Source of the DNA: Penicillus capitatus
Taxonomy: Eukaryota > Plantae > Chlorophyta
Assembly: GCA_965649825.1 (NCBI GenBank)
Contig: OZ287699.1
Coordinates: forward strand, 836,477-900,476
Reading direction: 5' to 3'
Length of the DNA stretch: 64,000 bases
Below are positions 1-23,189 of this stretch, piece after piece. Positions within the stretch are counted from its first letter, which is position 1. Each line of letters starts with the position of its first letter. The translations under genes were made by a program, and so were the position numbers. The notes under the pieces were generated by a model that worked only from the letters and a program-made list of their open reading frames with translations, searched no databases and had not been told where the DNA came from.

Positions 1-1813
1 CCTCGGTGCCGACGTTGAAGCAGGCCGGCTCCTTGTAGGACAGGAAGGGCGACGGGAGGACGCGTCCGCGGATCTGCTTCATGGCGGGCTCCAGCGCCGA
101 GAGCTGGAAGTCCGGGACCTTCTGCATCCGGTTGATGTCGGCGTCCTCCCTGATCAGGCCGTTCAGGTAGCGCTCCTTCTCGTCGGGCCTCTGGGCGGCG
201 AAGCGGATCATCTGCTCCTGGTGGCGCTCCGTGATCTTGTTCACGAACTGGGCGTGGGCGATCCTGCGGGGAAGAGGCCGTCGACGTCAGCAAGCGACCG
301 GCGGCGGGTGCTCGGCGTTACCGTGCGTACTCCGGAGGCAGGAAGCAGACCTTTCTGCCCCTCGAGCAGTCCAGGCAGGGGAGCTCGGGGTAGTGGAGGG
401 GACAGTCCATCCTCCCGTAGTACTCGGCGACGGTGATCTCTCCGTGCTCCCTGTGCTCGAAGCTGAGGCGCGTCGGCGGATCCAGCAGCCCGACGACCTT
501 CTTCCGCATCCTCCCGCGCACCAGACTCACCTAGAGCGGCCGCCCGTCTCCGCGCGGCGCGCGGGCGAGAGAGGGCGTCACCGTCAGGTTCTTCATGACG
601 CCTCTGACGATCGACTTCTGCTGGTTGGTGAGCTCGCGCGGGACGTGCTGCTGGCCGAGGATCTCGGCGATGAACTCGGAGACGAGCATCGGCTTGTAGA
701 ACGGGGCGCACGCGCTGTCGATGTTCAGGAACAGTCCGTTCTGGCAGGGACGGATGCTCTGGTGGTACCCCAGCCACGCCTGCAGCAGCAGCAATCGCTC
801 ACGGATCCGATCGCGGCGCAGCGGATCGAACCTCGGCTCCGTGTCCGATGTCGCGCTTGTTGGCCTGCGCGTCGACGAAGACGCTCTTCCTGTGGAGGAC
901 CCTGTCCGGCATCAGGGACGCGGCGTGGGACAGCAGGATCTCCAGCACGCGGACGGGCTCTGCCGGAAACTCGGCTCGGCTGCGCTGGACGTACTCCGTC
1001 AGGTGGCTCATGCGCACCACGGTCGTCTGGGTCAGCTTGATCTTGTACTGGCGAGACCTAGGACCCTGCTCCAGCTCGACGGTCTCCTCGCGCTCGTCGG
1101 TCGATATGATCTGCCCGGCCGTGTAGAGGGCGTTCTTGCCGTCGAAGATCCACCCCGGAGGCCAGTCCTCCCTCCTGGCCAGCTCAGCGAGCAGCAGGTG
1201 CTCCAGTCCCTGATTGAACTCGCACTCTGTCGCACGCACACGCGCTGCAGCTCGTCCGGCGTCGAGGTGCCTCACCGATCGTCACGTTGTACTGGAAGGC
1301 GCTGTTCAGCCGACAGTCCAGCTGGAAGTAGTTCGCCGCGAGCTGGGCCTGCGTGCCGATGGTGCCCGGCGGATAGGACGGCGCGTCCGGACTGTCGATG
1401 CTCTCCTGCGAGGCACACGCCTTCGGATCGCGGCGATGCGGCAGCGGGGTTCCCTACCGAGATGCACGGCTGTCCGATGCGAAAAGACGACGCGATCTGT
1501 TCGACCTGGCGGCGCCCTTCGGCCTCCGGCACGGCGCGGAAGTCGCCGCGACCTTCAACGCGAGACACCGGTGAGGGAGCAGCACGAGCGACGGCGCGAA
1601 CGGCGCACCTCCTCCTCTTCCGCCGAAGCGACCTCTTCCGCGGTCCCTGCCGCGGTCCCTGCCGCGACCTACAACAGATCGGCCCACCGTCAGAACGACG
1701 CGGTTCGCCTTCGGCGTTCGGCAGTTGGTGCCGAGACGCGTGTGCCGCCGAGCGCGAAGGCGTGCGAGCCTACCTCCATAGCCACCGCGTCCTCCGCCTC
1801 CTCTGCCCGACAT
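1..1813 (-). CDS. AGO: Argonaute, second copy (5' part: RGG tail, N, L1, PAZ, L2; remainder outside the window), multi-exon
   Basis: Inverted near-identical copy of 15855-17667. ATG at 1813 (MSGRGGGG), GT-AG introns conserved, no stops or frameshifts seen in the exons. Confidence 0.92.
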
Positions 1814-2113
1814 CGAACTCGGACGTGAACGAACAAACGCACCGACAACGCCGGACGGGAAGGAAGACGAGCAGGGAGACGCCGAACGGGGACAACGAAT
1901 GCGGACAGCGGTCGATTGGGTTCGAACGCAGACTGCCGCGCTCGGAAAAGAAACGATCGGCGAGACGAGAGTTCGCGCTCGATGGAGAAGGACGAAACAG
2001 TTTGTCGCCCTTCGTAATGGACGATCAAGGACGCCGAGACCGACGAAATGGAACTGTCGCGTCATCGTCGATCGATTTCCAGGACGCGGATCGTTCGGCG
2101 GCGACGCATCGGC

Positions 2114-2525
2114 ATGGACGTCCGGCAGCAGGTTCGAATCGAAACGCGTCGCACAGGCGCGATCCGTCCCGACAGGTGAAGAACTACCGTGCGACCCAGC
2201 GCCATGCGGGAAGGGGCGAGGCACGTGTGGATCATCGCATCGGGACGTCGATGTGCGTTCCGCTGCAGTGGGTCGCGCACGAGGCGTCCGCGGACGAGGA
2301 GGCGCATCGACAGGCGCTGCAGAGACTGGCCAACGGCGACGACGTCTCCTACCAGAGCACCCTGCGAGTGGTGAGGGTGGACGCATCTCGGTTCCCGAGA
2401 GACCAGAATCCTCCGGTCGAGCGCAACCCGGTGCAGCCGTTCACCCCTCTCTGCAGACGGGACGTCGGCGCATGTGGCTCCAGGGCTACGCTCGAAACGA
2501 GAGCGGAGGGTTCTTCACCTCCTAG
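2114..2525 (+). CDS. Unannotated 77-aa protein, 4 exons: MDVRQQVKNYRATQRHAGRGEWVAHEASADEEAHRQALQRLANGDDVSYQSTLRVTGRRRMWLQGYARNESGGFFTS
   Basis: Three phase-0 introns (GT, GC at 2221-2268, GT) join into an open frame ending in TAG at 2523-2525. Retained intact in both arms while the flanking DNA diverges. Confidence 0.65.
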
Positions 2526-2647
2526 ATCGCGAGGCCGGGCGATGCGGCACCGCGGACGTCGGTCACATCACTGCCGTCGCTCGGCCTTTCACTGAGAGTG
2601 GGGTTTGTTACGCATCGCCCTGTTCCGGAGTGTAAATCGATTCGGTC

Positions 2648-3619
2648 ATGGGTCCGCTCACCAACGCGTTCGTTCGCACGGTGCCCGTGCTTCGCGGCGT
2701 CCGGCCGTCGAAGGTCAGCGACTGCGTTCGGTCGCCCGGTCGCCCGCTTGTCGAGGCTGTCGCCGCAGCCACCGAAGTCGTTCTTCTGCCCCCAACGTGG
2801 AGTGATCCGACAGGTCGCTGCATCGAGAAGGGTCGCAGAGTGGTCGCGATCGGCGTCCCTTGCGCCGGGATGCCTCATCTCCCATCGCCGTCGGAGAACC
2901 ATCCCTCGACAGCCAAAGCGCTCGGTCCTTCGATTCTCCGTACGGCGATCTCGCCCCGCACCTGCTGCGATCGCTCTCGCCTGTTCAGTACATCGACGAG
3001 GACCTGTACGGAGACGACGATGACGACCTCGACGACGACGAGGTGATGGGGTTCGGAACCGACCTCGGCGGAGACGAGGACGAAGCCACGGATCCCAGCG
3101 AAGCGATGGAGGCGCTGCTTGACGAGGAGGAGGAGGAGACGGATGCCGACGAAGAGGAGGAGGCAGAGATCTCGGCCGACACCGAACAGGACCCGCCATC
3201 CGGATGCCCGAAGGGCTTCGCGCTGAGCTTCCTGTGGCTGGACAAGTACATCGCGTTCGCCGTGGACCAGATCTTCGGAAACGCAAGCGATCCGAACGCC
3301 GTCCATTCCTTGCGACCAAGCGACCTTGTGCGTGTAGAGAAAGCGTATTCCGCTGACGGAGTACTTCATCTGGCCGAGGACCGATGCCTGGGAGGAGCTC
3401 CGGCAGAGACTGAGCGAGAACGCGTGGATCGACGAAACGGATCAGGCGAGTGACGCGCCGAGCCGAACGACTGCGCACTGACGCTTCTGTCGCTATGCCC
3501 AGATCCTGCTGCTGAACCGGGCCACGCAGGTGATCAACTTCTGGCAAGACGAAGAGCAGGGCCGCTCACTGGACGACGCGAGACGGCAGTTCCCGGACTG
3601 CGTTTTCATGGGATCTTAG
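2648..3619 (+). CDS. PSRP3: Plastid-specific 30S ribosomal protein 3 (Ycf65 family), left copy; transit peptide plus acidic linker
   Basis: Spliced [39 protein letters not shown]...[13 protein letters not shown] matches the Ycf65 signature. GC-AG introns at 3283-3337 and 3446-3502. Confidence 0.9.
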
Positions 3620-3735
3620 ACGCACGCCTGCATTCCGACGGACACCTCTCTGTTCGCACACCGGGAAATGTTTTGAGAGCCGACTCTCTGTCTGTCTGCG
3701 GCCGCGGGAATCGAACGCGATGTCGTCGACACGCG

Positions 3736-3909
3736 TCAGTATCCGTCGTCGTATCCTCCCTGAAGTCCCTCGTCCATCTGCATCGGAACACCGTCGGTCC
3801 CCTGCGCCTCCGCCTTGATCGCTCGCCGAATGTCCTTCAGCTTCGACGCCAGGATGTCGATGGACTGCATCAGCACTTCGGCAGCGTTGAGCACGCCGGT
3901 CGTCTCCAG
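3736..3909 (-). pseudogene. RPB3: Orphan duplicate of the RPB3 terminal exon
   Basis: 174-nt exon with 3 differences from 13756-13929 (LETTGVLNAAEV vs LETTGVLDAAEV). CAG acceptor retained; upstream exons absent because the arm ends inside the intron. Confidence 0.85.
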
Positions 3910-3952
3910 CTGCGGCACAGGAAGATCGCATTGCTTCTGTTTCTTCTCACAG

Positions 3953-4024
3953 AACAGGTCAAAGACGAAGGAGTTGTTGAAGAAGCTACCCATGTGTATT
4001 GCCAACGACGCCCTGCGGCGCTGA
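3953..4024 (+). other. Possible stranded terminal exon (NRSKTKELLKKLPMCIANDALRR*) of an unidentified gene cut by the duplication junction
   Basis: Pyrimidine tract plus CACAG acceptor 22 nt from the arm boundary, followed by an open frame to TGA at 4022-4024. Confidence 0.35.
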
Positions 4025-4364
4025 CTTGGACGTGTCGTCGCTCCTTTAACTTCTCTCGGAGTAACGCGTCAACTTCGATGCCGTGTTCTTCAGCTCTTTC
4101 TTTTTTGTTGCGGCAATCATTGTACAGATATAGTATTATATGCATTCTCCTTTCGCAAACGGGCGACATATCGAACACTTCGTTCTTGAATAAGCTAAAT
4201 CTGCAGCCGCCATTTCGTGCTAATCACTACGTGCACCGTCATTAAGACATGCAGTACAGAAACGCCGCCCTTACCGATCGTGGTCAAAGCGATATGACGA
4301 AAAGACAGGACGTGGTTAAGATGTCTTTGTTCTTCAAGACTGTAACTTTATCATTTTGTTACAT

Positions 4365-5688
4365 CTAAGCATCCTTTGGGTCATCGCCAGTTGGAGGATC
4401 TCCACTTTGTATTTCTTTCTCCGGTGCCGATCGTTTTCGTTCGGCAACTTGTTCATCCGTCAAAGGCAGGTAATAGATAGGGGGCTTTGCCTGTGTTTTA
4501 AAGAACAGGTCCTCCAACTCTAATGCCGGTTTGGAGACGGTTCGTGCTGGTGGAGTTGTGGCAGTTGGATGTGTATTGGGCGGATACGGCATCTGGCGGT
4601 TCTTTTGATAACTTGCCGATCCAGATGCGCGAGCAAACAATGCTTTGGAACGGCCATCTTCAATTGCTTTCTTGGCGTCCTCCACAGAAACGTACTGTGG
4701 TATCAAATGTTTGCCGCTGCGTGGCCAAACAACATTATACGTGCCCAGATAAGCCTCGTGTGCTTGCTCTGTCGTTTCGTACATCACAAAGCAATGCGTC
4801 TTAATAGGCGGCATCCACATGTCCTCAATTGTGCCTGTCAAGATAGTCATTCATCTATATGACGCAGATTATCGCAATTGGGCAACTACCAAAGGCGGAC
4901 AACATTTCTTTGGCGGCCTTTTCTGTGAAAGGACGGACGAAGTTCTGAATACGCAGGGCACACGTTCGATCTTCCTCAGCAATGACTGGCGCCTCGGCAG
5001 GTATTGTCTCCATACCAGATGCTGTCCGTGAAGGTCCCGCCGCTTGGTCAGTAGACGCCTCAGCTTCTTTCGCTTCTCCTGCCAAACGTCACATCATCAC
5101 CAAACAACGATACCGTCGAGCGGACGCCGACCTTGAGGTGCTTCAAAATCTACAAGATCGTCATCGGCTGGTTTCTTCTCGGCTGCTTTTGTCGATGGAG
5201 ATGCCTCTTCAGCCGTTTTCTCTCCGCTGAATGGTTGATCGCCTTTCGTTTCGGCTGTTTCCAGTTTTTGTTTCTTTCTCGTTGGCTTTTCAGCCTCGAA
5301 ATCAAACTCCAGATCATCTTTACCATCGCCCAGCAATTCATTGAGACCACCCTTCACCTCTTTCTTCTCATCCGCTTCGTCCGACCCCATCGTTTCTTCT
5401 TCGACGCCTTGCATCTCTGAAACAAACGTCGTCACTATCAACCTCCTGCCACAAGGTCGATTACCGTCCCCTTGTGGTTCTTCCGCCTCTTCCTTTTTCT
5501 CGGCTTGCTGCAGAAAACGTCTAGAGATCCATTTCTACGCTGTAGACGGCATGTACTTGTTCAGCAAGTTTGGTTTTAAGACGCTCCACTAAGACGACTT
5601 TCTTTCCCGTTGCGTTTTCTCCGAGTTCTTTCAATTTCTTGCGCAGTTCCACGACTTTCAATTCGTCAACCCAAGAGAGTTCCGACAT
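4365..5688 (-). CDS. ACIN1: Acinus-like protein (SAP domain, RRM, RSB motif), multi-exon
   Basis: N-terminal VDELKVVELRKKLKELGENATGKKVVLVERL (SAP); RRM ALRIQNFVRPFT...IKTHCFVMY; LEDLFFKTQAKPPIYYLPLTDEQV (RNPS1/SAP18-binding motif). Confidence 0.88.
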
Positions 5689-5895
5689 CTACATGAATCC
5701 GCGTCAACGATTTCGTGTTTGTAAACGCGCAGCGCCGATCGTCGTCGGGCGACCGGTGACACAACCAACGGTATCTTTCAAGTCCCTAATGCCATTTGTA
5801 TCATTCCTTATCTCACCTTGCCACTGTGTCGCGTCACGTAGCACCAGAGGGGACGTCGAGTGTTTGCACTTCGATTGGGATACCGCCTTCCGGTT

Positions 5896-6843
5896 ATGAC
5901 GATGACGATGATGAGCAGCGACGTCACATCATTCTCCTCTGCAAGAACAGAACCGATGTCGAGCAGCGACGCCAAACTGCCGCCTTTTGTGGCATCGATC
6001 CGAGAGACGATCGATATCGGCGACGTTATTTCTATCGCCGAAGGCGCCGGACGCGAAATCCTTGACGTCTATAATGTGGAAGACACGACGACTTGGGAAG
6101 TGTGCTCAAAATCCGACAGCTCGCCACTGACGCTTGCCGACCGCAAAGCCAATAGCTTTATCTGCACACGTTTGCAGCAACTGACACCGCATATCCCGAT
6201 CGTCTCCGAAGAGAATGAACAAGTGCCGTACGACATTCGAAAACACTATCAGTTCTTCTGGTGTGTCGATCCACTGGATGGGACAAAGGAGTTTATCAAA
6301 CGCAATGGCCAGTTCACCGTCAACGTTGCTCTGATGCGCAAAGACACACCCATTCTTGGCGTCGTCCATACGCCTGTATCGGGGAAGACCCATTTCGCAA
6401 TGGAACAGCAAGGTGCTTTCATGAAAGAGGATGATGGCAAGGTCAGCTCCATCCAAGCGGCCGAGTTCAGTGAATCAGATTCCGGTTTGACGATCATTGG
6501 ATCGCGTTCGCATGGATCGTCCATGACAGAAGAATTTATGTCTCAATACGATGCACCCAAGTTTGCTTTGCTAGGCAGTTCTCTGAAACTCTTAATGATA
6601 GCCGAGGGGACAGCACATGTCTATCCACGACTGGCACCGACATCGGAATGGGATACTGCTGCAGCGCACGTGATCGTGACAGAGGCTGGCGGGGAAGTGT
6701 TACAAGCTGGAAAATGTGACAACAAAGGACAGCCACTTGAGGATTGGAAAACAGTTCTGGCCCAACAGACGGGCGTCATTTACAACAAAGAGTCCTTTCT
6801 GAATCCATACTTTGTCGTTTATGGAAAACGCAGAGGCGGCTAA
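5896..6843 (+). CDS. cysQ: 3'(2'),5'-bisphosphate nucleotidase, CysQ-like (inositol monophosphatase family), single exon
   Basis: Motifs IVSEE, WCVDPLDGTKEFIKRNGQFTVNVAL, GSSLK, PTSEWDTAAAH. Start codon is uncertain among several Mets. Confidence 0.88.
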   Translation: MTMTMMSSDVTSFSSARTEPMSSSDAKLPPFVASIRETIDIGDVISIAEGAGREILDVYNVEDTTTWEVCSKSDSSPLTLADRKANSFICTRLQQLTPHIPIVSEENEQVPYDIRKHYQFFWCVDPLDGTKEFIKRNGQFTVNVALMRKDTPILGVVHTPVSGKTHFAMEQQGAFMKEDDGKVSSIQAAEFSESDSGLTIIGSRSHGSSMTEEFMSQYDAPKFALLGSSLKLLMIAEGTAHVYPRLAPTSEWDTAAAHVIVTEAGGEVLQAGKCDNKGQPLEDWKTVLAQQTGVIYNKESFLNPYFVVYGKRRGG

Positions 6844-7127
6844 TCTGAAACAGAACTGCTCCCTTTCCTATTTTGTGTCGCGGCTAACAGTCATTCTTGT
6901 GTTATTTACACTTCTGGTTTTGCAATCTCTTGCGCGCTTCACAATGAATGGCGCTGGCCGCATGTCACATAGAAATACAGCTATGAACAGAGCTGATGGA
7001 CGGGCATCACTACAGGGACTCTTCTTTCGAATTGTCTTCGACGATTTGACGATCACTCCCTTTGCGCATAATGCGATCCAGATCTCCAGAAGAGGCACAT
7101 CTAATCACAACGGCACAGGCAACATCG

Positions 7128-8027
7128 TCAAGAGAGAATGAAAAAAGAGGCGTACTTTGTCAAGTAGATACTGGCTTCTTTTCGAAAACGGCCTTTTCTT
7201 GCGAAAAGCATTTCCACATCATCTTCAGATTCGCAAACGGCAATGACTGTCTGATACTTGAACCAAGGGAGTCTATTGGACTGCTCTTTGGATGGACTCC
7301 CAGGAATCCAATACCTTCGACAGTGCATCTATGACACACATGCGCACGTGAACAATGAAACCGTCGACGAAAGAGTAACGGATCCTACTCTTTTCTTTCG
7401 CCCGGCCTCGACAGACCAAATCAGTTCGTGGACAGAGGTATGGAAAGAACAGCTTTGCAGATCGAGACGTCCATACTTGAGAACCATCTCTCGCATACGA
7501 TGGTGAAGTTCTGTTTCCGATTCTCGAAATCGCTGAGGGACATTGAGAAACAGCACGACGCGTTTGTATTCGTGCATCCAGAAGACAGGAAAGAAGCACA
7601 GACGCAGAAAGCGACGCGAACACAGCTCTTCGCGACAGGCCACATGTTCCGAGTGACAGGGATGCAGACGGCTTTCCTGATCCGATGGGCTGTGACAATC
7701 TTCATGAGTTGTCCGTTTACCGCCACGAAAAGACACTTCCACATCCTTCTCTTCACTTTCACCATCTTCCACTCCATTTCCTGGCACTGCAGGTTGAGAT
7801 CTGTCACATCAAGGAGCTTAGGCATCAACCACAGTACCTGTGGCTTTTCCATTGCGGTTGGAACGCAACATTCGGGGAAGGGAAAGGTCGGTAGAAGTCG
7901 TTGAGTGGTGTGAGGACGAAAGGTGTGATGTGAATCGTATTTTCGGGAGTTTGGCGATAGGACTCTTTCGCAGTGTCTCGAAACTTATCCATTCCTGATC
8001 GTCAAACTCCGCTTCGGCAAACATCAT
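7128..8027 (-). CDS. Hypothetical protein, about 3 exons
   Basis: ORFs 7818..8027, 7329..7787 and 7128..7328 can be joined in frame by short GT-AG introns; no recognisable domain. Confidence 0.45.
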
Positions 8028-8431
8028 CGCATTTCGACGAAGTTTTGTCCAAAAACACGTCGTTACGCAGCACTCTTTCAGAATGTCCCTAAAACGCTTT
8101 CTTGTCAGACATGTCGATAAAAGACACGTAAGCGCGTTCTAAAGTCAGTGCGGCGTGGCGCAGGGTCGACCTGTGCATTTTTGAAATGAGCCCAAAGGCC
8201 TGTAGGTTCTGAGGAAAGAGGCCATGCGCCGCGATCAGTTTCCATACGGTATAATACCGGTCTTTTTCTTTTTCGACCGCCATTCACATTACAATGTGTC
8301 AACCGTTGATGCGAAACGCCTTCAATTGCAATTTCCTGCTCAAACGAGGACGACAGCGACGATGACATCGATGATCGATCCCACAATCGAAAGACGAACC
8401 CATACAAACAGCAGAACGCACAGATGAATCC

Positions 8432-9205
8432 TCAGATCTTGTTTCGCTTGGCACGATGTGAAGGCATCATGGTATCGACATCATCACCAAAGAGCTCGTG
8501 CAATGACAGCAGATGTGGATCCGGCGACTCACAGAAATCGGATGGCCAACTGCGCAGTCCTGCCTTCTCTGCCCATTCCTCTTGAAAATCCGGCGATTCG
8601 TGGGACATCGGTAGCAATGCAGAGGATGTCAAATCGGGTGGCGGTGGGCTCGAAACAACCATGCATCTTGAATCCTCCCTGTCTGATGGACTCAGCATCC
8701 CTGTACAATCATTCATACCGTCACACAAATCTCACACAATCCCATTCGGCAACTCTCACCGGATGAGGGAGGACGTACAGCATGAAGGGGGTCTAGGACA
8801 GTCGGAGGTGCCAGAGGATCCGATTGAAAAGCGAGATAGACTTCGGAATGGAGACCATTCATGGCCGACCGTGTCCTCATTTCTCCATGACCATTTGAAA
8901 AGGACGCGTCTCCATTGAAGGGCATCTGTGAGGCGCGTCTCTGCTTGAGTTCTGCGATTTCTTGTTGCGTGGCATTGAGCAGCTGCTCTTGGCGTCGGGA
9001 AATGTCGACGTATTGAGCGAGTCTCTGCGTGAGAACCTGATGGGACTTCTTCAGTGATTGATGTCGGCCTCGCAGTTGAATCAGTTCTTCGGCTGCAGCT
9101 TCGCTATCCACCTTCATTCTATCTACCTGCAGCACGACGACGTCGAGCGAGAGAGAAGTCGACATTTCTCACTTTGCGTTCCAGCTCGGCAATAAACTCC
9201 ATCAT
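8432..9205 (-). CDS. Hypothetical coiled-coil protein
   Basis: MMEFIAELERK spliced to VDRMKVDSEAAAEELIQLRGRHQSLKKSHQVLTQRL shows a heptad pattern. The terminal exon 8432..8728 is tentative. Confidence 0.5.
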
Positions 9206-10317
9206 TGCCGACCAGCTTGAAGTTTGAACGGAGAAGGCGACAAAGCGCCGGAAATTCTGAAGTGCGTGGCCGGAAGAGATCGGTCGAGCGGAACAAAAAC
9301 GCCGGCGCAGACGTTTGGACAAATGCAGAGGGGAGAGTAAGAGTACGGCGACTAAATAGTGGGACGAGGTTTTGCGTGGAATTCTACGTGACGCTCCGGT
9401 CGTTGACTTTTCGGTTCAACAACAAATCCGAATCGATTTCTGTCACGATAATGCCATGATGGATTGCTTAAGTCATCGACTCGCTTAGGGATCGTCAAAA
9501 CTTATCGCACGGTGATCGATCAGGATTGACAATAATGATCGCTTCCAGACGATGACAAGAATTTGACGAAGATCCTTGACGGCGTCGAAAGCGATTGGCA
9601 CGATCGTAGACGGTGTCCATCGAGAAGGAAGCGACATCGAAGTCTCGGCGATCCAATGGAGATAAATATCTATCCAGTTCGCTCCAGCAGATATCATGCC
9701 TGCCTTGGTGCCATTGACGATAGATGCTGAATTGCTGGTCATGTATCGTCATGAGGAAATGGATGGGGTGCTGGCTTGGTCTTTGACTGCTGATGGGACA
9801 GCGGGCGCCAGTCCACGATCGGCTTAGGAACTTCTTGCGAAAATGTACAAGGCCCCTATGGCTGTATCCCGAATACCGCGGTCTCTTTCTTATGATCTGC
9901 GTTTCGAACGATGGGCGGCATTCGTCGAGCATTGGCGAAGAAGCAAAGAGCCAGCGAGACCCGCGCGAACTTGCCGGAAGCTTCACGGAGTCCAGAAGCA
10001 TTCTGCCGTCACTTCATTGCTCCGAACAGTGCCCGCCACCTGCAGATAGGTACGCAACAAAAACGATTCACAGCTCTGCGTTTCCGTGCTGACGTGGTAC
10101 CCACGCCGTTTCGGTGGCAGGTTGAAAAAGAGAAAAGTAGCACGTCGACGACAAACACGAGAAATCGAAATACGTGACATCAAGTGGATGTCGCCATCAT
10201 CGCTTTTCTTTCACTCCGCGTGTAAGAGGCGGACATAATGTTGTCTTTGCCCGCATTCCATCATGGCTTCGCTTTCATCCACGATGCCGTAGATGATGGG
10301 CACTGGGACACCAGCGC

Positions 10318-10391
10318 GCTTCTTTAGCTCAGTTGGTTAGAGCACCCGTTTAGTAAGCGGGAGGTCCAGAGTTCAAATCTCTGAGGAAGCA
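10318..10391 (+). tRNA. trnT-AGT: tRNA-Thr(AGT)
   Basis: Cloverleaf: acceptor GCTTCTT/AGGAAGC, D arm GCTC/GAGC, anticodon arm CCCGT-TTAGTAA-GCGGG, T arm CAGAG-TTCAAAT-CTCTG. No encoded CCA; TTTT follows at about 10396. Confidence 0.96.
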
Positions 10392-10430
10392 GCCCTTTTC
10401 ATCATCCGTTGTGTCTCGCGTTATTGGCGG

Positions 10431-10962
10431 ATGTCTGCTGCACGTTCAAGCTACCGGTCTCTGCTGAGAGTCATCCATACGAGTCCACCCTTTTTGCTCG
10501 CCTTATCCTGCTTAATAAGAAGCGATGTGCCAAGGATTCAAGGGAGACAAAGAAATGATCAGCAAGGCCGTGGAGAATGTCCGCGGACGCTACGAAGTAA
10601 GCGCATCTTCTCAGATCTTACGTCTAGAATAGCGATAGGGATTACTGCCATCTCACTCTTTGCCTTTACTGTATACCACGTAGGCTTACCGAAAGGAAAA
10701 GGACAAGAAGATCGTACAGGAGAAACTCGAAGAAGCCCGAGAGGCGGTGCGGTTTCTGAGGGACTTCGTCGTGCAATCCGAACAGGGGAAAGACGGACAA
10801 TTTCGTACATCGATCTCATGGACATTCCTGTTTGTGTGATGTCTGTCGTACGATCGTTCTCTAGGGATCAAATTGACGGCTCAACAAGTGGCTTCCATGC
10901 AAGAAGAGACAAAGGAACGCGCGGATAGCAAGACACAGACGCCTCGTTCGTTTAAGTCATGA
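10431..10962 (+). CDS. LYRM7: LYR-motif protein, complex III assembly factor MZM1/LYRM7-like, 4 exons
   Basis: Spliced YRSLL...QGFKGDKEMISKAVENVRGRYE-AYRKEKD...EEAREAVRFLRDFVVQ fits the LYRM7 pattern. The donor of intron 1 is ambiguous. Confidence 0.7.
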
Positions 10963-11168
10963 TCTCTGTGACTTCATTTACTTTCTTTAACTGAGTTTGA
11001 TGCCTCACACAACGACAACGCCAACAACTTTAATAAAGAAATCACACATCTCACCGACCCAACAATGAAGCAATGCATAATCCGTTCATGCCAAGCATAG
11101 TTTGGGGGAGAAGGAGAGAAAAAATAGAAGGAATGTTTTTAAGGCACATCATGGATTGTGTGTGCAGT

Positions 11169-12503
11169 TCAGTATTGGTATCCCTTCTCATACATGCCGA
11201 CGGCGGCCTCGGCAGATTCTTCAGAGGGATCATACTTGCCAAGCTGTGCCATGCTGTTCGCTCTGGCACGCTTGAGCAATGCTTCTTGTGCCGGTTTCTC
11301 ATTCGCCTCATCCCCTTGCCACGTTTGCAGCACAGAGTTCTGCAGAGCACGCGCATAGGAGAAAGAGACATGCCACGGATTGGTCTCTTGGTTCATCGCG
11401 TTGAGATTCAATGTCGCTTCGAGTTCCGATTGGCCACCGGACAAAAACATAATGCCTATATTCAGATCCTCTCACTCTTCTCACTCATCAATACGACTTG
11501 CTTACCGGGTACGGCAGGGGGGACACGTCTTTTCAGCATCCGCAGAGTATATTCCGCCACGCGTTCTGGCGATTCTTTCTTAGAGCTGTCTGCTCCGGGT
11601 GTGACCATGGAAGGTTTGAGAAGCATGCCCTCGAACAGAACGCCGTTGTCGGCAAGATACTTAAATGTCTCGGCCCAGATGTCCATAGCCACAGCCAGTG
11701 TCCTGTCAATGTCATGATCGCCATCTAATAGCACTTCTGGCTCGACGATGGGGACCAAGCCAGCAGATTGGGCAATGGCCGCATAACGTGCCAGTCCATA
11801 GGCACAATCGCGCAAGGCAATGATCGAAGGACCCGATGGAATACTAATAACAGATCTCCACTTAGCAAAGCGTGCGCCTGCTTGGTAATACTCTGCACAT
11901 CTAAGATCACACAGATCACTGTTTTAATAAAGATCCCAAAAGATGATGATCATCACCGTGCCGCCAATCCGTCCAGTCCCTGACACCAGCTCTCTTCGTT
12001 GGCGTTAATCAAAGGCGACAGTCCTTTGTCGACTTTAATACCCGGTACGATTCCTTGTGCTTTCAAGCAGTCGACAAACGGCTTTCCGTCGCGTGCCGAT
12101 TGATAAAGCGTTTCTTCGAAGAGAATCGCGCCGGAGATATATTGACCGAGACCCTCTGTCGTCAACAGCAGTTCGCGGTACGTGCGTCTGTTCGGCTCGG
12201 TATTGTCGACGCCAATCGACGCAAGACGCTTTCCGCATGTCGCATTCGATTCATCCATCGCCAAGATGCCACGACCGGGAGACGCGATCTGTTTCTAAGC
12301 ATCACAACGAGTACAAGGCTTAAGATCCATCGGTCCACCGACACGGTGACGGGACGTACTGCTGTGGCAACAAGTTCATCGTCATAAGCGCCGGCACGTG
12401 TCACAACGCGCGTTCTTTGAGGACGAACAAGACGAGCACGTGTTGGTGCGTGCGGTCTTCGCAGAAATACAGCTTTCCTTGTAGCGAGAAGAGACGTTGC
12501 CAT
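11169..12503 (-). CDS. FBA: Plastid class I fructose-bisphosphate aldolase, 4 exons
   Basis: Transit peptide, [56 protein letters not shown]-terminal GMYEKGYQY. Confidence 0.97.
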
Positions 12504-12694
12504 CTTGCGCGACAGAGGTATGCCAATGCAGTAGAACGTAAAGAGACGAAGAAACGCGAGAACCAAAGGTTGCACCCCTTGATGACCGTCTGTTTAAAAG
12601 GGATCAGGACAGTGGGTGCCACGTGGAGCGGACCGTATACGAAGCATATACGGTTGGAAGGCAGGACGTTGGGACGCCAGAGCACCAACCATCC

Positions 12695-13929
12695 ATGCAA
12701 AGGCATCCGATTATCACGATGCGTTCCTGCACGGAACTCTCGGCGGAGTTCGTGCTGTCCGGCACAGATGCTTCCGTCGCCAATGCTCTGAGGCGCATCA
12801 TGATTGGCGAGATACCGACGATCGCGATCGAACTCGTCGAAATCGAGACCAACACGACCGTGCTGACGGACGACTTCCTGGCACATCGACTGGGACTCAT
12901 CCCCCTGTCCTCTCTGCGTCGGCATCCTCCGTCCCTGCGACGTGGGTTCTGATGGGACGTCTCTGTTCAGAGGCCGCCAAGATGGTGGGCGCCTACGACA
13001 ACGCCGAGGAAGACATCGACGAGATCGAGCTGTTTCTGGACGTGCACTGCACGGAGGAAGAGCGAACGGTGCGGTCATGAGCATCCCTGCATCGCTGCAC
13101 GGGGATGCTGTTCGCAGATGCTGGTCACATCGAAAGACCTGTCCGTGGGGACGCCCAACGTCGACGTGGTCCCCATCGGCCATCCGGGGTTCTGCTTCGA
13201 CGACATAGCGAACATCCCGGTCACCGTCGTCAAACTGAGACAGGGACAGTCTCTCAAACTGAGGGCCATCGCCGTGAAGGTTCGCTCTCTTGTGTCCTCC
13301 CTGCATCGCCCGTGATCAGGTTTCTGCGCGAGACCAGGGAATCGGGAGAGACCACAGCAAGTGGAGCCCCGTCTCCGCCGCTTCCTTCACGAATATGCCC
13401 GAGATTGCCTTCAACGAATACGTCCTGGCCGGATGGTCCCCACAGCGCAAGATCGAGCTGTTCGAGGAGCTGGCCGAGTGCTTTCCGGTCGGGCGAAACC
13501 CCTTCTGCCTCGACCTGCCGGCCAAAAAGGTCGGTTCTCTCTGCCACACCCACCCGCCGACAAGTGCAGACCGACTGCCGCAGATGATTCTCAAGCCGGA
13601 GCTGTACAACTTTGACGACGCGCACGTTGCCGTGCTGGAGAAGCACGGGGTCCCGGACCTCTTCAAGATACAGTCGGTGCCGGGCACCTTCATCTTCAAA
13701 GTGCGTGTCCGCGATCAGATGCCGACGCGTTGCGATCTTCCTGTGCCGCACGCAGCTGGAGACGACCGGCGTGCTCGACGCCGCCGAAGTGCTGATGCAG
13801 TCCATCGACATCCTGGCGTCGAAGCTGAAGGACATTCGGCGAGCGATCAAGGCGGAGGCGCAGGGGACCGACGGTGTTCCGATGCAGATGGACGAGGGAC
13901 TTCAGGGCGGATACGACGACGGATACTGA
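12695..13929 (+). CDS. RPB3: RNA polymerase II subunit RPB3, multi-exon
   Basis: DASVANALRRIMIGEIPTIAIELVEIETNTTVLTDDFLAHRLGLIPL, VKLRQGQSLKL, GIGRDHSKWSP, FIFK-LETTG. Last intron 13701-13755. Confidence 0.95.
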
Positions 13930-14045
13930 CGCGTGTAGACGACGTCGCGTTCGATTCCCGCGGCCGCAGACAGACAGAGAGTCGGCTCTCAAAACATTTC
14001 CCGGTGTGCGAACAGAGAGGTGTCCGTCGGAATGCAGGCGTGCGT

Positions 14046-15017
14046 CTAAGATCCCATGAAAACGCAGTCCGGGAACTGCAGTCTCGCGTCGTCCAGTGAG
14101 CGGCCCTGCTCTTCGTCTTGCCAGAAGTTGATCACCTGCGTGGCCCGGTTCAGCAGCAGGATCTGGGCATAGCGACAGAAGCGTCAGTGCGCAGTCGTTC
14201 GGCTCGGCGCGTCACTCGCCTGATCCGTTTCGTCGATCCACGCGTTCTCGCTCAGCCTCTGTCGGAGCTCCTCCCAGGCATCGGTCCTCGGCCAGATGAA
14301 GTACTCCGTCAGCGGAATGCGCTTTTTCTACACGCACAAGGTCGCTTGGTCGCAAGGAATGGACGGCGTTCTGATCGCTTGCGTTTCCGAAGATCTGGTC
14401 CACGGCGAACGCGATGTACTTGTCCAGCCACAGGAAGCTCAGCGCGAAGCCCTTCGGGCATCCGGATGGCGGGTCCTGTTCGGTGTCGGCCGAGATCTCT
14501 GCCTCCTCCTCGTCGTCGGCATCCGTCTCCTCCTCCTCGTCGTCCAGCAGCGCCTCCATCGCTTCGCTGGGATCCGCGGCTTCGTCCTCGTCTCCGCCGA
14601 GATCGGCTCCGAACCCCATCACCTCGTCGTCGTCGAGGTCGTCATCGTCGTCTCCGTACAGGTCCTCGTCGATGTACTGGACAGGCGAGAGCGATCGCAG
14701 CAGGTGCGGGGCGAGATCGCCGTACGGAGAAGCGGAGGACCGAGCGCCTTGGCTGTCGAGGGATTGTTGTCCGACGGCGATGGGAGATGAGGCATCCCGG
14801 AGCAAGGGACGCCGATCGCGGCAACTCCGGGACCCTTCTCGATGCAGCGACCTGTCGGATCACACCACGTCGAGGCGGAAGAGCGACTTCGGTGGCTGCG
14901 GCGACAGCCTCGACAATCGAGCGACCGGGCGACCGAACGCAGTCGGCTGACCTTCGACGGCCGGACGCCGCGAGGCACGGGCACCGTGCGAACGGACGCG
15001 TTGGTGAGCGGACCCAT
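14046..15017 (-). CDS. PSRP3: Plastid-specific 30S ribosomal protein 3 (Ycf65 family), right copy
   Basis: Same exon structure as 2648-3619 with an intact frame; several amino-acid differences in the transit peptide and acidic linker. Confidence 0.9.
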
Positions 15018-15139
15018 GACCGAATCGATTTACACTCCGGAAGAGGGCGATGCGTAACAAACCCCACTCTCAGTGAAAGACCGAGCGACGGCAGTGACGT
15101 GACCGACGTCCGCGGTGCCGCATCGCCCGGCCTCGCGAT

Positions 15140-15551
15140 CTAGGAGGTGAAGAACCCTCCGCTCTCGTTTCGAGCGTAGCCCTGGAGCCACATGCGCCGA
15201 CGTCCCGTCTGCAGAGAGGGGTGAACGGCTGCACCGGGTTGCGCTCGACCGGAGGATTCTGGTCTCTCGGGAACCGAGATGCGTCCACCCTCACCACTCG
15301 CAGGGTGCTCTGGTAGGAGACGTCGTCGCCGTTGGCCAGTCTCTGCAGCGCCTGTCGATGCGCCTCCTCGTCCGCGGACGCCTCGTGCGCGACCCACTGC
15401 AGCGGAACGCACATCGACGTCCCGATGCGATGATCCACACGTGCCTCGCCCCTTCCCCCATGGCGCTGGGTCGCACGGTAGTTCTTCACCTGTCGGGACG
15501 GATCGCGCCTGTGCGATGCGTTTCGATTCGAACCTGCTGCCGGACGTCCAT
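15140..15551 (-). CDS. Unannotated 77-aa protein, right copy, divergent from AGO
   Basis: Mirror of 2114-2525 with the same length (412 nt) and same splice sites; ATG lies 303 nt from the AGO ATG. Confidence 0.65.
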
Positions 15552-15854
15552 GCCGATCGATGCGTCGCCGCCGAACGATTCGCGTCCTGGAAATCGATCG
15601 ACGATGACGCGACAGTCTCATTTCGTCGGTCTCGGCGGCCTTGATCGTCCATTACGAAGGGCGACAACTGTTTCGTCCTTCTCCATCGAGCGCGAACTCT
15701 CGTCTCGCCGATCGTTACTTTTCAGAGCGCGGCAGTCTGCGTTCGAACCCAATCGACCGCTGTCCGCATTCGTTGTCTTTGTTCGGCGTCTCCCTGCTCG
15801 TCTTCCTTCCCGTCCGGCGTTGTCGGTGCGTTTGTTCGTTCGCGTCCGAGTTCG

Positions 15855-18800
15855 ATGTCGGGCAGAGGAGGCGGAGGACGCGGTGGCTATGGAGGTAGGC
15901 TCGCACGCCTTCGCGCTCGGCGGCACACGCGTCTCGGCACCAACTGTCGAACGCCGAAGGCGAACCGCGTCCTTCTGACGGTGGGCGGATCTGTTGTAGG
16001 TCGCGGCAGGGACCGCGGCAGGGACCGCGGAAGAGGTCGCTTCGGCGGAAGAGGAGGAGGTGCGCCGTTCGCGCCGTCGCTCGTGCTGCTTCCTCACCGG
16101 TGTCTCGCGTTGAAGGTCGCGGCGACTTCCGCGCCGTGCCGGAGGCCGAAGGGCGTCGCCAGGTCGAGCAGATCGCGTCGTCTTTTCGCATCGGACAGCC
16201 GTGCATCTCGGTAGGGAACCCCGCTGCCGCATCGCCGCGATCCGAAGGCGTGTGCCTCGCAGGAGAGCATCGACAGTCCGGACGCGCCGTCCTATCCGCC
16301 GGGCACCATCGGCACGCAGGCCCAGCTCGCGGCGAACTACTTCCAGCTGGACTGTCGGCTGAACAGCGCCTTCCAGTACAACGTGACAATCGGTGAGGCA
16401 CCTCGACGCCGGACGAGCTGCAGCGCGTGTGCGTGCGACAGAGTGCGAGTTCAATCAGGGACTGGAGCACCTGCTGCTCGCTGAGCTGGCCAGGAGGGAG
16501 GACTGGCCTCCGGGGTGGATCTTCGACGGCAAGAACGCCCTCTACACGGCCGGGCAGATCATATCGACCGACGAGCGCGAGGAGACCGTCGAGCTGGAGC
16601 AGGGTCCTAGGTCTCGCCAGTACAAGATCAAGCTGACCCAGACGACCGTGGTGCGCATGAGCCACCTGACGGAGTACGTCCAGCGCAGCCGAGCCGAGTT
16701 TCCGGCAGAGCCCGTCCGCGTGCTGGAGATCCTGCTGTCCCACGCCGCGTCCCTGATGCCGGACAGGGTCCTCCACAGGAAGAGCGTCTTCGTCGACGCG
16801 CAGGCCAACAAGCGCGACATCGGACACGGAGCCGAGGTTCGATCCGCTCCGCCGCGATCGGATCCGTGAGCGATTGCTGCTGCTGCAGGCGTGGCTGGGG
16901 TACCACCAGAGCATCCGTCCCTGCCAGAACGGACTGTTCCTGAACATCGACAGCGCGTGCGCCCCGTTCTACAAGCCGATGCTCGTCTCCGAGTTCATCG
17001 CCGAGATCCTCGGCCAGCAGCACGTCCCGCGCGAGCTCACCAACCAGCAGAAGTCGATCGTCAGAGGCGTCATGAAGAACCTGACGGTGACGCCCTCTCT
17101 CGCCCGCGCGCCGCGCGGAGACGGGCGGCCGCTCTAGGTGAGTCTGGTGCGCGGGAGGATGCGGAAGAAGGTCGTCGGGCTGCTGGATCCGCCGACGCGC
17201 CTCAGCTTCGAGCACAGGGAGCACGGAGAGATCACCGTCGCCGAGTACTACGGGAGGATGGACTGTCCCCTCCACTACCCCGAGCTCCCCTGCCTGGACT
17301 GCTCGAGGGGCAGAAAGGTCTGCTTCCTGCCTCCGGAGTACGCACGGTAACGCCGAGCACCCGCCGCCGGTTGCTTGCTGACGTCGACGGTCGCTTCCCC
17401 GCAGGATCGCCCACGCCCAGTTCGTGAACAAGATCACGGAGCGCCACCAGGAGCAGATGATCCGCTTCGCCGCCCAGAGGCCCGACGAGAAGGAGCGCTA
17501 CCTGAACGGCCTGATCAGGGAGGACGCCGACATCAACCGGATGCAGAAGGTCCCGGACTTCCAGCTCTCGGCGCTGGAGCCCGCCATGAAGCAGATCCGC
17601 GGACGCGTCCTCCCGTCCCCCTTCCTGTCCTACAAGGAGCCGGCCTGCTTCAACGTCGGCACCGAGGGGCAGTGGAACCTCGGGGGGATGACGATGAACT
17701 TCTTCAAGGCGAAGAAGCTCAAGTCCTGGGCGCTGCTGTCGCTGGCGCAGGAGCGTTACATCAACAGGCCCGGCGAGAACGGCATCCAGTCGTTCCTGCA
17801 CGAGCTCTACGAGGCCCTGAGGGCGCACACGGTCATCCCGTCCTCGGTCGACCTGTCGAGGCCGCCGATCGTCTACACAAGCGACTCCAACTTCATCCAG
17901 GACATGGAGCAGGCCAAGGCGCGGGCGCGTGATGCCTACGGCAGGGATCCGGACATCATCCTCTGTCTCATCCCCCGGAGAAGTGCGCGCTCTCATCTGC
18001 GCGGCCCCGATCGGACGCCTTCTGTGCCTCCGCAGATACGCGCCTGTACAAGATCGTCAAGCGGACGTCGGACGTCCACGTCGGCATTCCGACGCAGTGC
18101 TTCGCGGGGGACAAGTCCGGAGTCGGCGACAATCGGCCTCCGAGGGGACGCATGCAGTACTGCGCCAACCTGGCGCTCAAGATCAACGTGAAGGTATTTC
18201 CCTTCCCCTCTCCTCTCCGCGGAACGCAGGGATCGATGCTCCGTAGGTGGGCGGCACCAACTCGGTCCTGCTGGGGACGACGCAGTGCGGACTGCCCATG
18301 GTGCACCAGCGCCGACCCTACATCGTCCTGGGGGCGGACGTGTCGCACGCCTCGCCGGGCTCGCATCTCTCGTCGATCGCCGCCGTGGTGGGCAGCGTCG
18401 ATCCCATGGCGTCCCGCTACTCCAGCCGCATCACGTCACAGCCGCCGCGCGAGGAGATCATCATCGACATGAAGGAGTCCGTCAAGGGACTCCTGCGCGA
18501 CTTCTACGAGCACAACCACCAGAAGAAGCCCGAGTCCATCGTCGTGTTCCGGGACGGCGTGTCGGAGGGCTTCTTCAGCCGGGTGCTGACGCACGAGTAC
18601 AGGGCCATCCGAGAGGCCTGCGGCGAGATGGGCGATCCGGCGGCGGACTACGCGCCGCCCATCACCTACATCATCATCCAGAAGAGGCACCACACGCGTC
18701 TGTTTCCGAAGGGGCAGAACGTCGCCCACCGGAGCGGGAACGTGAAGCCCGGGACGGTGGTGGACTCGGAGATCACCAGTCCCTACGGCCACGACTTCTT

Positions 18801-19107
18801 TCTCTGCTCCCAGGCGGGAATCCAGGGAACCGTGCGCCCCGCGCACTACCACGTGCTGGTGGACGAGAACAGATTCGGTTCGGACGCCATCCAGGTCATG
18901 TGCTACTGGATGTGCTACATGCAGTGCAGATGCACCAAGCCGATCTCGGTGCCGGCTCCGGCGAACTACGCCCATCTGGCGGCGCTGCGTGCGAGGCTGA
19001 TCGCGGGCGAGGAGACGGACGACGAGACGAGCAGCATCGCATCGGGATCCGGGCCGTCGGCCGGACCAGCTTTCGGAGCTTCCCAGGCCAAGATGTACTA
19101 CGTCTAA
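15855..19107 (+). CDS. AGO: Eukaryotic Argonaute (RGG-N-PAZ-MID-PIWI), about 10 exons, slicer tetrad intact
   Basis: AWLGYHQSIRP, PAZ ITVAEYY...YPELPCL...FLPPE, MID LYKIVK...GIPTQC...YCANLALKINVK, PIWI GADVSH / PREEII / FRDGVSEG / HHTRLFP / NYAHLAALRAR (D-E-D-H), ending MYYV-TAA. Confidence 0.97.
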
Positions 19108-19977
19108 TGCGCGTGCGTCGGCGGCATCCATCGATCGTCCTTCTCGACAGGACGCATTTTCCTGTTCTCCTAAGTACCTTCTTTTCTCGTGTTCTCGGCG
19201 CAGCTCTAGTCGCGGAAATCATCGACGACGTGCACTTATCCTCTGGCCGATGTGCTGTTGAGAGTCTTTGACTTCGATAGTGAGGGGGATGGATACCAGT
19301 CGGAAGGATGGCGATGTCATTTGTCAACGTACTGTTTTTTGACAATTTTCGATCGTGGGCAAGCAGAAGGGTGTTCTTAAAAGGGAGAGGGAAATGAATG
19401 GAGTGTTTAAGAAATGAGATATCTATCGGGAGTCGTCTCACAGACATGAGGCCAGAAATGCCTCAGTTCTGTCCCTCGCGATCCACAACGGCGCACCGTC
19501 GTTCGCCGTTTCATAACCGTGCCCGCATCCGCGTCAGCAGCTTACATGCACACTGCATGGCATCGACACCCGACTGCGTGTTCAGGACACCTGCAGTCCA
19601 TCGCGGTTGTCGCCTCGACCTCGTTGGCGCCTTCGTCTAACCGCCATTCGTACCTGACGGAGAGCCAAAACGCCGTGCAGCTGCCGCCGAGATATTGGCA
19701 GCACCTTATCCCGTCTCCAAAAAGGGTCTTCGTGCCATTACCTGCGTCTAAACATCTGCGTCGACGGTTGGACCTTCCTCGCTCTCTGCGTCTCTATTGG
19801 TCTCATCGCTACCGAGGCCATCACTTCCAAGCTAGTCCTTTGACGGTCCATCGACAGCTCGTCTTTACCATCCCACGCTTCAACCATTGCCATTCCGCGG
19901 CACCTCGTAACACACCGGGCGGAAGACCCCTCCCTGACGGCGTCGTCGTTGTTTCAGGAAGAACCGGTCGTTGAAGC

Positions 19978-21842: not shown

Positions 21843-23189
21843 AAAGTCAGTTCTCCGCTGCGAGCGTCATGCATGAACGCTGAATGTGTGTGTGATTTTG
21901 ATCTCTGCCTCCCACCCAACCTGTGATACATATCTGTCGTGCAAGGATTTCTTCTTTTTATTCGTTCATGAGTCCTACCTATCAGTGATCGACTGCATCT
22001 GATTTTCGATCTCGTTGTCCAGAGGCTTTACCTCGTCGTATGTATGAATAGGAGGCATCGATTGACTTTGCGTAGTAGGTCCTGCTTTAGAAATAAGCTC
22101 CGTTTTCAGTTCACACTGTTTTTAATAATGCACTGCGTGGCGTTGAATCTGGATGCGCTTTCCACCGTCTGTTTCTTTTCGAATTCATTCATGATGTTTC
22201 TAAGAAGAGCTGACAGAATCAGTGACCGATCTTTAAATCAATTAACGTAGATCTCACTCCTGTGTGGCATTTGATTCAGCATTTCATATCTATCACAACT
22301 GACAGCTTTTCAAGCTCAGAAACAACAATAATGGCAACATCTTCTGTTACCTAGAATAAGTACCATGCGTCGTCGTCAAGATTGGCTGCGAATCACAGAT
22401 GTCCTCAGGCACACCGTAGATGCCATTCTTTTACTTTTCTCGGTCCACATTAATTCTTAGTCGTTCGTCTTCGTTGTCTGGATGCCCGTTTCGCGTTCGT
22501 CCCTGATGAACAGGTTTGGGCGAGGCGTCGACTGAATTCGGAAGTGCTGTCGTCCATGAATGCTCAGAAGCTGTTGATGGTGCCCCCTCTGTCTGCGAAC
22601 GTTGAAAACCTGCTGGATATTTCTTTTTGTACGGGTTCTTTCTCCAGTTGTGCTTATTTAACAACAACAACAACTTCTATCGATTTCTGAACAAAGACCA
22701 TTCGTCAATCGTCCCTACGTGCAGTGACAGGTTGTGGTTCAGTCCGGGATCGCCCCGAAATCAAGTCCTGGCAAATGCGGCGGGTCACCAAGGGACACCG
22801 GGTATGTCACTCTTCCTACTGTTGGTGTGATTCCCTTTTGCCATTGGGCCGCTGAAGGCTTCCCGTGCAAAGCAAGCTTTCGTGTAGCGTTGACGGAATT
22901 GAGAGACAACATTTGAAAAGAAAATTAAGAAAGAAGCTGCAACTTGTTATTCTTGGCCGTGGCCGCTGAGCAGTATCAATACTCCGATTATTGAATCGAA
23001 TGACAGAGCGATCAAATCGAAGAGGATGGCCAAAGTTAGTGCAATGTGACATTATACGGCGGGAGATATTTGAGATCGGATGGATCGACTACATAAGCAG
23101 TCTTGCTTCGTAATCTTGATCGATTGTTGCAACTGCGATTTATGGGTGAACGGCAACAGGCGATCGATGGTTCGACGATAGTCGACACC

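Follow-up and report, generated by a model that had tools for sequence, protein, structure and literature searches.

The question raised by a 64,000-nucleotide stretch of the green alga Penicillus capitatus (contig OZ287699.1, positions 836,477 to 900,476; hereafter the window, to which all coordinates refer unless another contig is named) is how two near-identical Argonaute (AGO) genes came to lie in inverted orientation around a block of single-copy genes, and what has kept them alike. The reading we favor, to which we give a probability of roughly 0.8, is that of a conserved palindrome of about 10 kb that arose by a single duplication before the split between the window lineage and its closest sampled relative, whose arms were homogenized by GC-biased gene conversion and whose left arm later suffered a deletion in the window lineage.

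An inverted duplication with Argonaute in both arms

Repeat search and BLAST self-comparison showed bases 1-3930 to be the reverse complement of bases 13731-17667 at 98.1% identity, with 64 mismatches and five indel events (1, 4, 1, 1 and 4 bp) over 3939 alignment columns. Two high-identity inverted arms thus enclose a unique spacer of 9800 bp, confirming the inverted segmental duplication of at least 3.9 kb around a 9.8-kb spacer that had been proposed in a sequence-only reading of the window. The window contains no Ns and, except for a minisatellite at 61.8 kb, no other long repeat. Because the left-arm match begins at base 1, the left arm is truncated by the window edge, and by comparison with the 10.25-kb arms of the relative described below the arm of the window is almost certainly much longer than 3.9 kb. 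The inner boundary falls inside the last intron of RPB3, 25 nt 5' of the acceptor, so that the left arm carries only an orphan last exon of that gene. Differences between the arms are unevenly distributed, from about 0.5% across the coding part of AGO up to 2.8-4% near the upstream region of PSRP3. The structural elements visible within the window and the two AGO copies are as follows.

1-3930, minus strand: left arm (truncated), with the 5' half of AGO, a small open reading frame (ORF), PSRP3 and the orphan RPB3 last exon; GC 0.649
3931-13730, no strand: unique spacer, 9800 bp
13731-17667, plus strand: right arm, matched portion; the copy in ancestral context, collinear on both sides with the outgroup contig L001 (RPB3 upstream exons, downstream gene)
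1-1813, minus strand: left AGO, 5' part only, with domains N, L1 and PAZ, running into the following exon
15855-19107, plus strand: right AGO; ATG at 15855 provisional (RGG-rich N-terminus), modelled from 16112; PIWI exon 18247-19107, stop at 19107

The right AGO, which extends past the matched arm end at 17667, was modelled as 876 codons in eight exons separated by seven GT-AG introns of 49-58 bp. These introns (16211-18246) are very short and have a GC content of about 70%. Pfam searches recovered ArgoN, ArgoL1, PAZ, ArgoMid and Piwi in the model, the full AGO architecture, and the D, E, D and H residues aligned to D597, E637, D669 and H807 of human AGO2, in agreement with the complete tetrad reported earlier for this copy. 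From its domains and tetrad, the right AGO can be assigned to the slicer-type proteins of the eukaryotic AGO clade. Its closest named protein matches were from the green algae Auxenochlorella, Tetraselmis and Apatococcus, which, with a Bryopsis match for SAL1 and a nuclear-encoded PSRP3, point to a chlorophyte host. A collection of 5.8 billion proteins contained no match above 93% to either the AGO or the SAL1 of the window. Across the 431 modelled codons visible in the left arm, the two copies differ at four synonymous and no non-synonymous codons. The visible left AGO is devoid of stops and frameshifts and the small ORF is identical in both arms, so that the earlier description of intact frames in both copies holds.

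Upstream of AGO, the arms differ by a 4-bp indel (15558-15561), a 1-bp indel (15668) and a GGG/AAA substitution (15778-15780), sites that are candidate copy-specific markers or promoter differences.

The palindrome in a sister taxon and concerted evolution of the arms

The closest relative of the window (hereafter the sister taxon) was found in ENA assembly ERZ26696514, with DNA about 85% identical and a SAL1 of 93% amino-acid identity. Its locus is present on two contigs, ctg303748 (824 kb, 188.21x) and ctg303767 (960 kb, 188.38x), which are 98.9% identical at the locus and were hence read as haplotypes. On either contig, the same spacer genes in the same orientation are flanked left and right by arms of about 10.25 kb that are 98.0-98.4% identical to each other. 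The four arms, retrieved via cluster members of the ORFs called inside them, extend from 63 bp upstream of the RPB3 ATG (equivalent to window position 12632) to the equivalent of 22708, with sharp inner and outer boundaries and a left flank that differs in sequence from the right flank. Each arm contains complete RPB3, PSRP3, the small ORF, complete AGO, a homeobox gene and a gene resembling 6-phospho-3-hexuloisomerase (PHI/SIS-like gene), and the spacer of the window is collinear with the sister stretch (L003) at 86.7% identity. The palindrome is therefore not an assembly artefact, since another species shows the same architecture on each of two long contigs. The sister arms delimit two further elements in the window.

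12632-13730, plus strand: 'ex-arm' footprint, single-copy in the window but within both arms of the sister taxon; GC 0.60
17668-22708, plus strand: right arm, predicted remainder by comparison with the 10.25-kb sister arms, with the 3' half of AGO, the homeobox gene and the PHI/SIS-like gene

The left-arm counterpart of 17668-22708 would lie beyond the window start.

Distances between the arms were 0.016 in the window and 0.010-0.017 in the sister taxon, against 0.16-0.18 between the two taxa. All 564 parsimony-informative sites of the four-sequence comparison grouped the arms by species and none by side (564 : 0 : 0). The palindromes of the two taxa are read as orthologous, and their arms are closer within species (1.0-1.7%) than between them (16-18%), which supports the previous suggestion that arm-to-arm gene conversion keeps the copies similar. 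Among the four sister arms, 67 sites divided two versus two, with 21 arm-specific, 11 haplotype-specific and 35 'cross' sites (L1=R2 / L2=R1); variants are therefore shared between arms, 46 of the 67 sites not being arm-specific in these two haplotypes of one assembly. Sites of all three classes alternate along the arm on a scale of 0.1-1 kb, and in each 1-kb bin arm-to-arm divergence equals allelic divergence, indicating that the four copies form a single exchangeable pool, which can exist only if exchange between arms continues. The outer 0.9 kb of the arm is enriched in arm-specific sites, a pile-up expected as an edge effect of conversion tracts.

The AGO copies of the sister taxon extend the comparison beyond the left edge of the window. 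The 876-codon model is intact in four of four arm copies; any two of them differ at 12-20 synonymous and 1-4 non-synonymous codons. Both copies also retain an intact PIWI exon, 95% identical to that of the window. Between window and sister, AGO differs at about 130 synonymous and 56 non-synonymous codons and, with all copies intact, the gene appears to be under purifying selection. The presence of two working AGO genes, as put forward in the sequence-only reading, is accordingly plausible: near-identity was verified for the visible half of the left copy and the sister copies are intact, while the PIWI domain of the left copy is predicted from the sister taxon.

Two more distant Logan contigs served as outgroups. 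L001 (7.3 kb), whose AGO PIWI domain is 74% identical at the amino-acid level, is collinear by tblastx with window positions 13226-20830 across RPB3, PSRP3, the small ORF, AGO and the downstream homeobox gene. As this collinearity spans both flanks of the right copy, the right copy is the one in ancestral context. In L004 (141 kb, SAL1 71% identical), the gene order is Acinus-SAL1-FBA-RPB3-PSRP3 and no inverted copy was detected within 8.5 kb of Acinus; tblastx matched only Acinus, RPB3 and PSRP3, without homologues of the sister left flank or of the 2.7-kb 'Z' sequence. An alpha-amylase-like gene (L004 17976-20879), and not AGO, follows PSRP3 in this contig, so that the PSRP3-AGO linkage seen in the window, the sister taxon and L001 is not universal.

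Composition, history and competing explanations

The arms differ sharply in composition from their surroundings, with a GC content of 0.65 in the window and 0.61 in the sister taxon, compared with 0.50 in the spacers (0.498 in the window up to 12631) and 0.46-0.48 in the flanks. Except for the outer 0.9 kb, arm GC is thus above that of the adjoining sequence (0.61-0.65 versus 0.46-0.50). In the sister taxon the step in GC falls at the inner arm boundary; in the window it falls at the equivalent position, 12632, and not at the present boundary, 13731. Enrichment extends to arm introns (0.70) and to the intergenic stretches of the arms (0.61-0.66). GC at third codon positions (GC3), for which the out-of-phase values of the AGO_mid and AGO_N exons were left out, ranged from 0.74 to 0.92 for arm genes in the window and sister taxon versus 0.37-0.60 in outgroups L001 and L004, and from 0.49 to 0.60 versus 0.39-0.49 for spacer genes. 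The high GC of the arms fits GC-biased gene conversion.

In the history we propose, a segment of about 10 kb comprising RPB3, PSRP3, the small ORF, a slicer-type AGO, the homeobox gene and the PHI/SIS-like gene would have been duplicated in inverted orientation in an ancestor shared by the window and sister taxa. The new copy would have been placed on the far side of the Acinus-SAL1-FBA block, whose genes would thereby have become the spacer of about 9-10 kb. The arms would since have repeatedly served each other as repair templates in non-crossover gene conversion, which would account for their concerted evolution, with both AGO copies staying intact. GC-biased repair of heteroduplexes may have raised the arms to 61-65% GC and their GC3 to as much as 0.9, while GC in the spacer, the flanks and the single-copy outgroup orthologues remained between 42 and 50%. 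A deletion in the window lineage would then have taken out the inner 1.1 kb of the left arm (RPB3 exons 1-4), together with the sequence that separates arm from Acinus in the sister taxon. Such a deletion would have left behind a 25-nt filler at the junction, the orphan left RPB3 exon and the GC-rich former arm sequence of the right side (12632-13730). The filler (3931-3955) had no match in any sister locus, and the left RPB3 exon is best seen as the remnant of a formerly complete duplicated RPB3. The molecular route would be conversion of the synthesis-dependent strand annealing type coupled to biased mismatch repair; the single origin of the duplication, the extent of the window's left arm beyond its visible part and whatever advantage two AGO copies may confer are likewise inferred.

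Several observations weigh against this history. The structure in the window is known from its assembled contig alone, and the outer end of the left arm and the PIWI domain of the left AGO lie outside the window, so that the length and intactness of the left copy are judged from the sister taxon. The sister haplotypes come from one metagenome assembly, in which phase switches could inflate the haplotype-specific and 'cross' classes; they cannot, though, account for the scarcity of arm-specific sites. In the outermost 0.9 kb, GC content is only 0.42-0.49, and the enrichment thus stops short of the arm end; this is also the least-converted part of the arm. When the 64 arm differences of the window were polarized by the sister taxon, 24 strong-to-weak (S>W) and 17 weak-to-strong (W>S) changes were obtained, with no excess of the latter, counts that say nothing on GC bias because the differences are unconverted new mutations. 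Finally, the inner boundaries differ between the taxa (13731 in the window, the equivalent of 12632 in the sister taxon) and no site keeps a left-versus-right orthology signal that would unite the left arms across species, so that single origin is argued from position, orientation and the GC footprint and not from shared derived characters.

The last two observations would also follow if the window and sister lineages had each undergone a recent inverted duplication, arm similarity then reflecting youth and not conversion, and fold-back or template-switch mechanisms recurrently make local inverted duplications. Two such events, however, would have had to strike within 3 kb of one site, with matching orientation and on the same side of Acinus: measured from the point where window-sister homology ends, the window arm starts 25 bp away and the sister arm 2.7 kb away. 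The polymorphisms shared between sister arms imply active conversion, so that low divergence is no evidence of youth. The GC block is common to both taxa, matches the extent of the arm including the stretch 12632-13730 that is single-copy in the window, and is absent from the outgroups; moreover, the 1.6% arm divergence allows far too little time for GC3 to shift from about 0.5 to about 0.9. We thus regard independent duplications as quite unlikely. A reverse-joined haplotig or a fold-back chimeric read in the window assembly would be in line with an arm divergence (1.6-1.9%) similar in order to the allelic divergence of the sister taxon (1.1-2%), and with a left junction at an arbitrary point within an intron. 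Yet the structure recurs in the assembly of a different species, on the 824-kb and 960-kb contigs, each at about 188x and each with both arms. The window, besides being free of Ns, has imperfect arm copies around a 9.8-kb gene-bearing spacer, unlike fold-back read artefacts, which makes this explanation extremely improbable.

Compatible with conversion is the proposal, made in the sequence-only reading, that crossovers between the arms invert the spacer and that both isomers coexist. Inverted arms of at least 3.9 to 10 kb at 98% identity are adequate substrates for such flipping, rare inversions are seen in human Y palindrome P6 (PMC3723533), and the 35 'cross' sites could partly reflect past even-numbered crossovers. 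Against it, a single spacer orientation was found in the three assemblies sampled, that is in the window and both sister haplotypes, across about 16% divergence, and in all three the flank with the Peptidase_C48 and CRAL_TRIO genes adjoins the arm on the FBA side. In addition, 'cross' sites interleave with arm-specific ones at 0.1-1 kb, for which short conversion tracts are a better fit than a pair of crossovers, and there is no recombinase gene within the locus. Coexisting isomers are therefore not supported and active flipping appears unlikely, although inversions may still occur rarely. The GC content of the arms might instead have no relation to the palindrome, a pre-existing GC-rich block, highly expressed or recombination-hot, having happened to be duplicated. 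Highly expressed genes can have high GC3 in some algae, and the enrichment ends with the last gene, about 0.9 kb short of the outer arm boundary. Nevertheless, introns and intergenic sequence of the arms are equally GC-rich, the L001 and L004 orthologues lack this enrichment, there is little difference between taxa in the spacer genes, and the inner GC step matches the arm boundary. The outer 0.9 kb, furthermore, is also where arm-specific variants accumulate and hence where conversion is least. A fortuitously duplicated GC-rich block is for these reasons unlikely. Very unlikely, in our view, are two further scenarios, in which the palindrome would mark a recombination-suppressed (mating-type or sex-linked) region or in which transcription reading through both arms would give a long hairpin RNA and make AGO a target of its own small-RNA pathway.

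Accompanying genes and relation to known palindromes

The remaining genes of the arms and of the spacer are listed below.

12695-13929, plus strand: complete RPB3 gene; exons 1-4 in the spacer, last exon (13756-13929) in the right arm
3736-3909, minus strand: orphan RPB3 last exon, left arm
14046-14859, minus strand: PSRP3, right copy, a Ycf65-type plastid ribosomal protein (Pfam PF04839, E = 1e-20)
2806-3619, plus strand: PSRP3, left copy, duplicate of the right copy
15140-15417, minus strand: small conserved ORF, right copy; conserved with L001 by tblastx; the '77-aa gene' of the sequence-only reading
2248-2525, plus strand: small conserved ORF, left copy, identical to the right copy
about 19975-21000: homeobox gene, within the region equivalent to the sister arm; homeodomain E = 1e-4, just under the Pfam cut-off
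about 21035-21842: PHI/SIS-like gene, resembling 6-phospho-3-hexuloisomerase (YckF, MJ1247; SIS fold), with PDB matches to 1e-15
SAP 5620-5664 and RSB 4617-4823, minus strand: Acinus-like gene, spacer
5923-6843, plus strand: SAL1/CysQ nucleotidase, spacer; best named match from Bryopsis (62%)
10318-10391, plus strand: tRNA-Thr (AGU), mid-spacer
11172-12270, minus strand: class-I fructose-bisphosphate aldolase (FBA), spacer

Pfam and PDB sequence searches confirmed PSRP3, here nuclear-encoded, and its conserved domain has two amino-acid differences between the arms. RPB3 has an RNA_pol_L domain and its top PDB matches are subunit 3 of Pol II/IV/V. A 4-bp insertion, CGCA (13751-13754), in the acceptor region of the last intron of the functional right RPB3 is absent from the left remnant of the window and from all four sister arms. 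The small ORF had no Pfam match and its exon model transfers poorly to the sister taxon; of the arm contents named previously, AGO, PSRP3 and the RPB3 last exon were thus recovered, and the 77-aa gene only in part, as this conserved ORF. The homeobox gene product contains an RW.P...Q...LE motif like that of WOX proteins. The PHI/SIS-like gene, without Pfam hits at E<=0.01, is the last gene before the GC content drops.

The right flank carries the Peptidase_C48 and CRAL_TRIO genes. A tRNA-like T-arm motif just beyond the right outer boundary was dropped, ARAGORN and Rfam having made no call. Repeats outside the arms comprise a 91-bp tandem repeat (about 2 copies, 23196-23393) just past the arm-equivalent region, 24-bp and 51-bp repeats (47534-47785) within a block of high-GC3 ORFs at 47.3-47.9 kb, and the GC-rich minisatellite (61781-62182), with periods of 21 and 27 bp and about 17 copies at 91-98% matches. 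In haplotype 1 of the sister taxon, a long terminal repeat (LTR) retrotransposon (L003 2147-6523, corresponding to L006 at about 3480-7860) lies between Acinus and the left arm; it has RVT_1, RNase H and integrase domains. Its 110-bp LTRs are identical and haplotype 2 (L008) is without the insertion, which is therefore recent and polymorphic. The stored ENA gene calls in the GC-rich sister arms (L003, L005, L006, L007 and L008) are mostly long antisense or off-frame ORFs, so that the protein database lacks the AGO exons of the sister taxon and the AGO search missed them. On a practical level, gene callers of the prokaryotic style miss the true exons in such GC-rich arms.

Inverted copies that are kept alike are known from other systems. 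The inverted repeat of plastid genomes consists of two inverted copies kept identical by copy correction on either side of single-copy regions, in a geometry that allows flip-flop isomers. In that organellar, recombination-dependent replication setting both isomers are routine, whereas the locus described here is nuclear and was seen in one orientation. Drosophila Hsp70Aa/Ab is a small autosomal inverted gene pair in concerted evolution by gene conversion, but with one gene per arm and a short spacer; to our knowledge, no comparable compositional shift has been reported for it. The palindromes of primate X and Y chromosomes, P1-P8 on the Y and 12 conserved ones on the X, have a similar organization, with inverted arms, a unique spacer and protein-coding arm genes (PMC8327919, PMC8981503, PMC3723533, PMC8600007). 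As in the locus studied here, related primate species have orthologous palindromes whose arms resemble each other more within a species than between species. The arms also exceed the flanks in GC, boundaries shift so that an arm in one species can be spacer in another (PMC8981503), and inversions, where they occur, are rare. Arm GC excess in primates is about 5 points (46.3% versus 41.2%; PMC8981503), compared with about 13-17 points here, roughly threefold larger. Arms span tens to hundreds of kb or more in primates but 10 kb here. The operational threshold for primate X palindromes asks for arms of 8 kb or more that are at least 99% identical. The sister arms measure 10.25 kb, and 3.9 kb or more can be seen in the window, but the identity of 98.0-98.4% falls below that of primate arms (>99%). 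The host also differs, being a green alga without known sex linkage, as do the arm genes, which are housekeeping and RNA interference genes and not testis gene families. Willow W-chromosome palindromes provide a gene-converting example outside mammals, in a plant lineage, although they are far larger and lie in a non-recombining sex-determination region (PMC7023750). The locus thus works like the sex-chromosome palindromes of mammals and willow, sharing their structural and evolutionary features except for an identity of at least 99%.

Our literature search returned no published AGO-bearing palindrome in green algae and nothing on ERZ26696514. The locus represents a compact, fully sequence-resolved palindrome outside the sex chromosomes of animals and plants, in which the hallmarks of conversion, namely concerted evolution, shared polymorphism, edge effects and boundary erosion, can be read from three assemblies. 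Should the region nonetheless prove to be sex-linked, conversion between arms would substitute for meiotic recombination in preserving AGO, the homeobox regulator and, in the sister taxon, RPB3. The rise in GC3 from about 0.5 to about 0.9 within a sharp-edged 10-kb block is an unusually strong compositional effect and turns the locus into a natural experiment in which GC-biased gene conversion of green algae can be measured. In Chlamydomonas, Cr-AGO2 and Cr-AGO3 share 89-90% amino-acid identity and have different roles (PMC6668577), in contrast to the AGO copies of the window, with about 100% protein identity in the visible part. From these sequences, conversion appears to prevent the subfunctionalization of AGO here, unlike in the Chlamydomonas pair, and the locus shows how conversion can hold two Argonaute genes identical.

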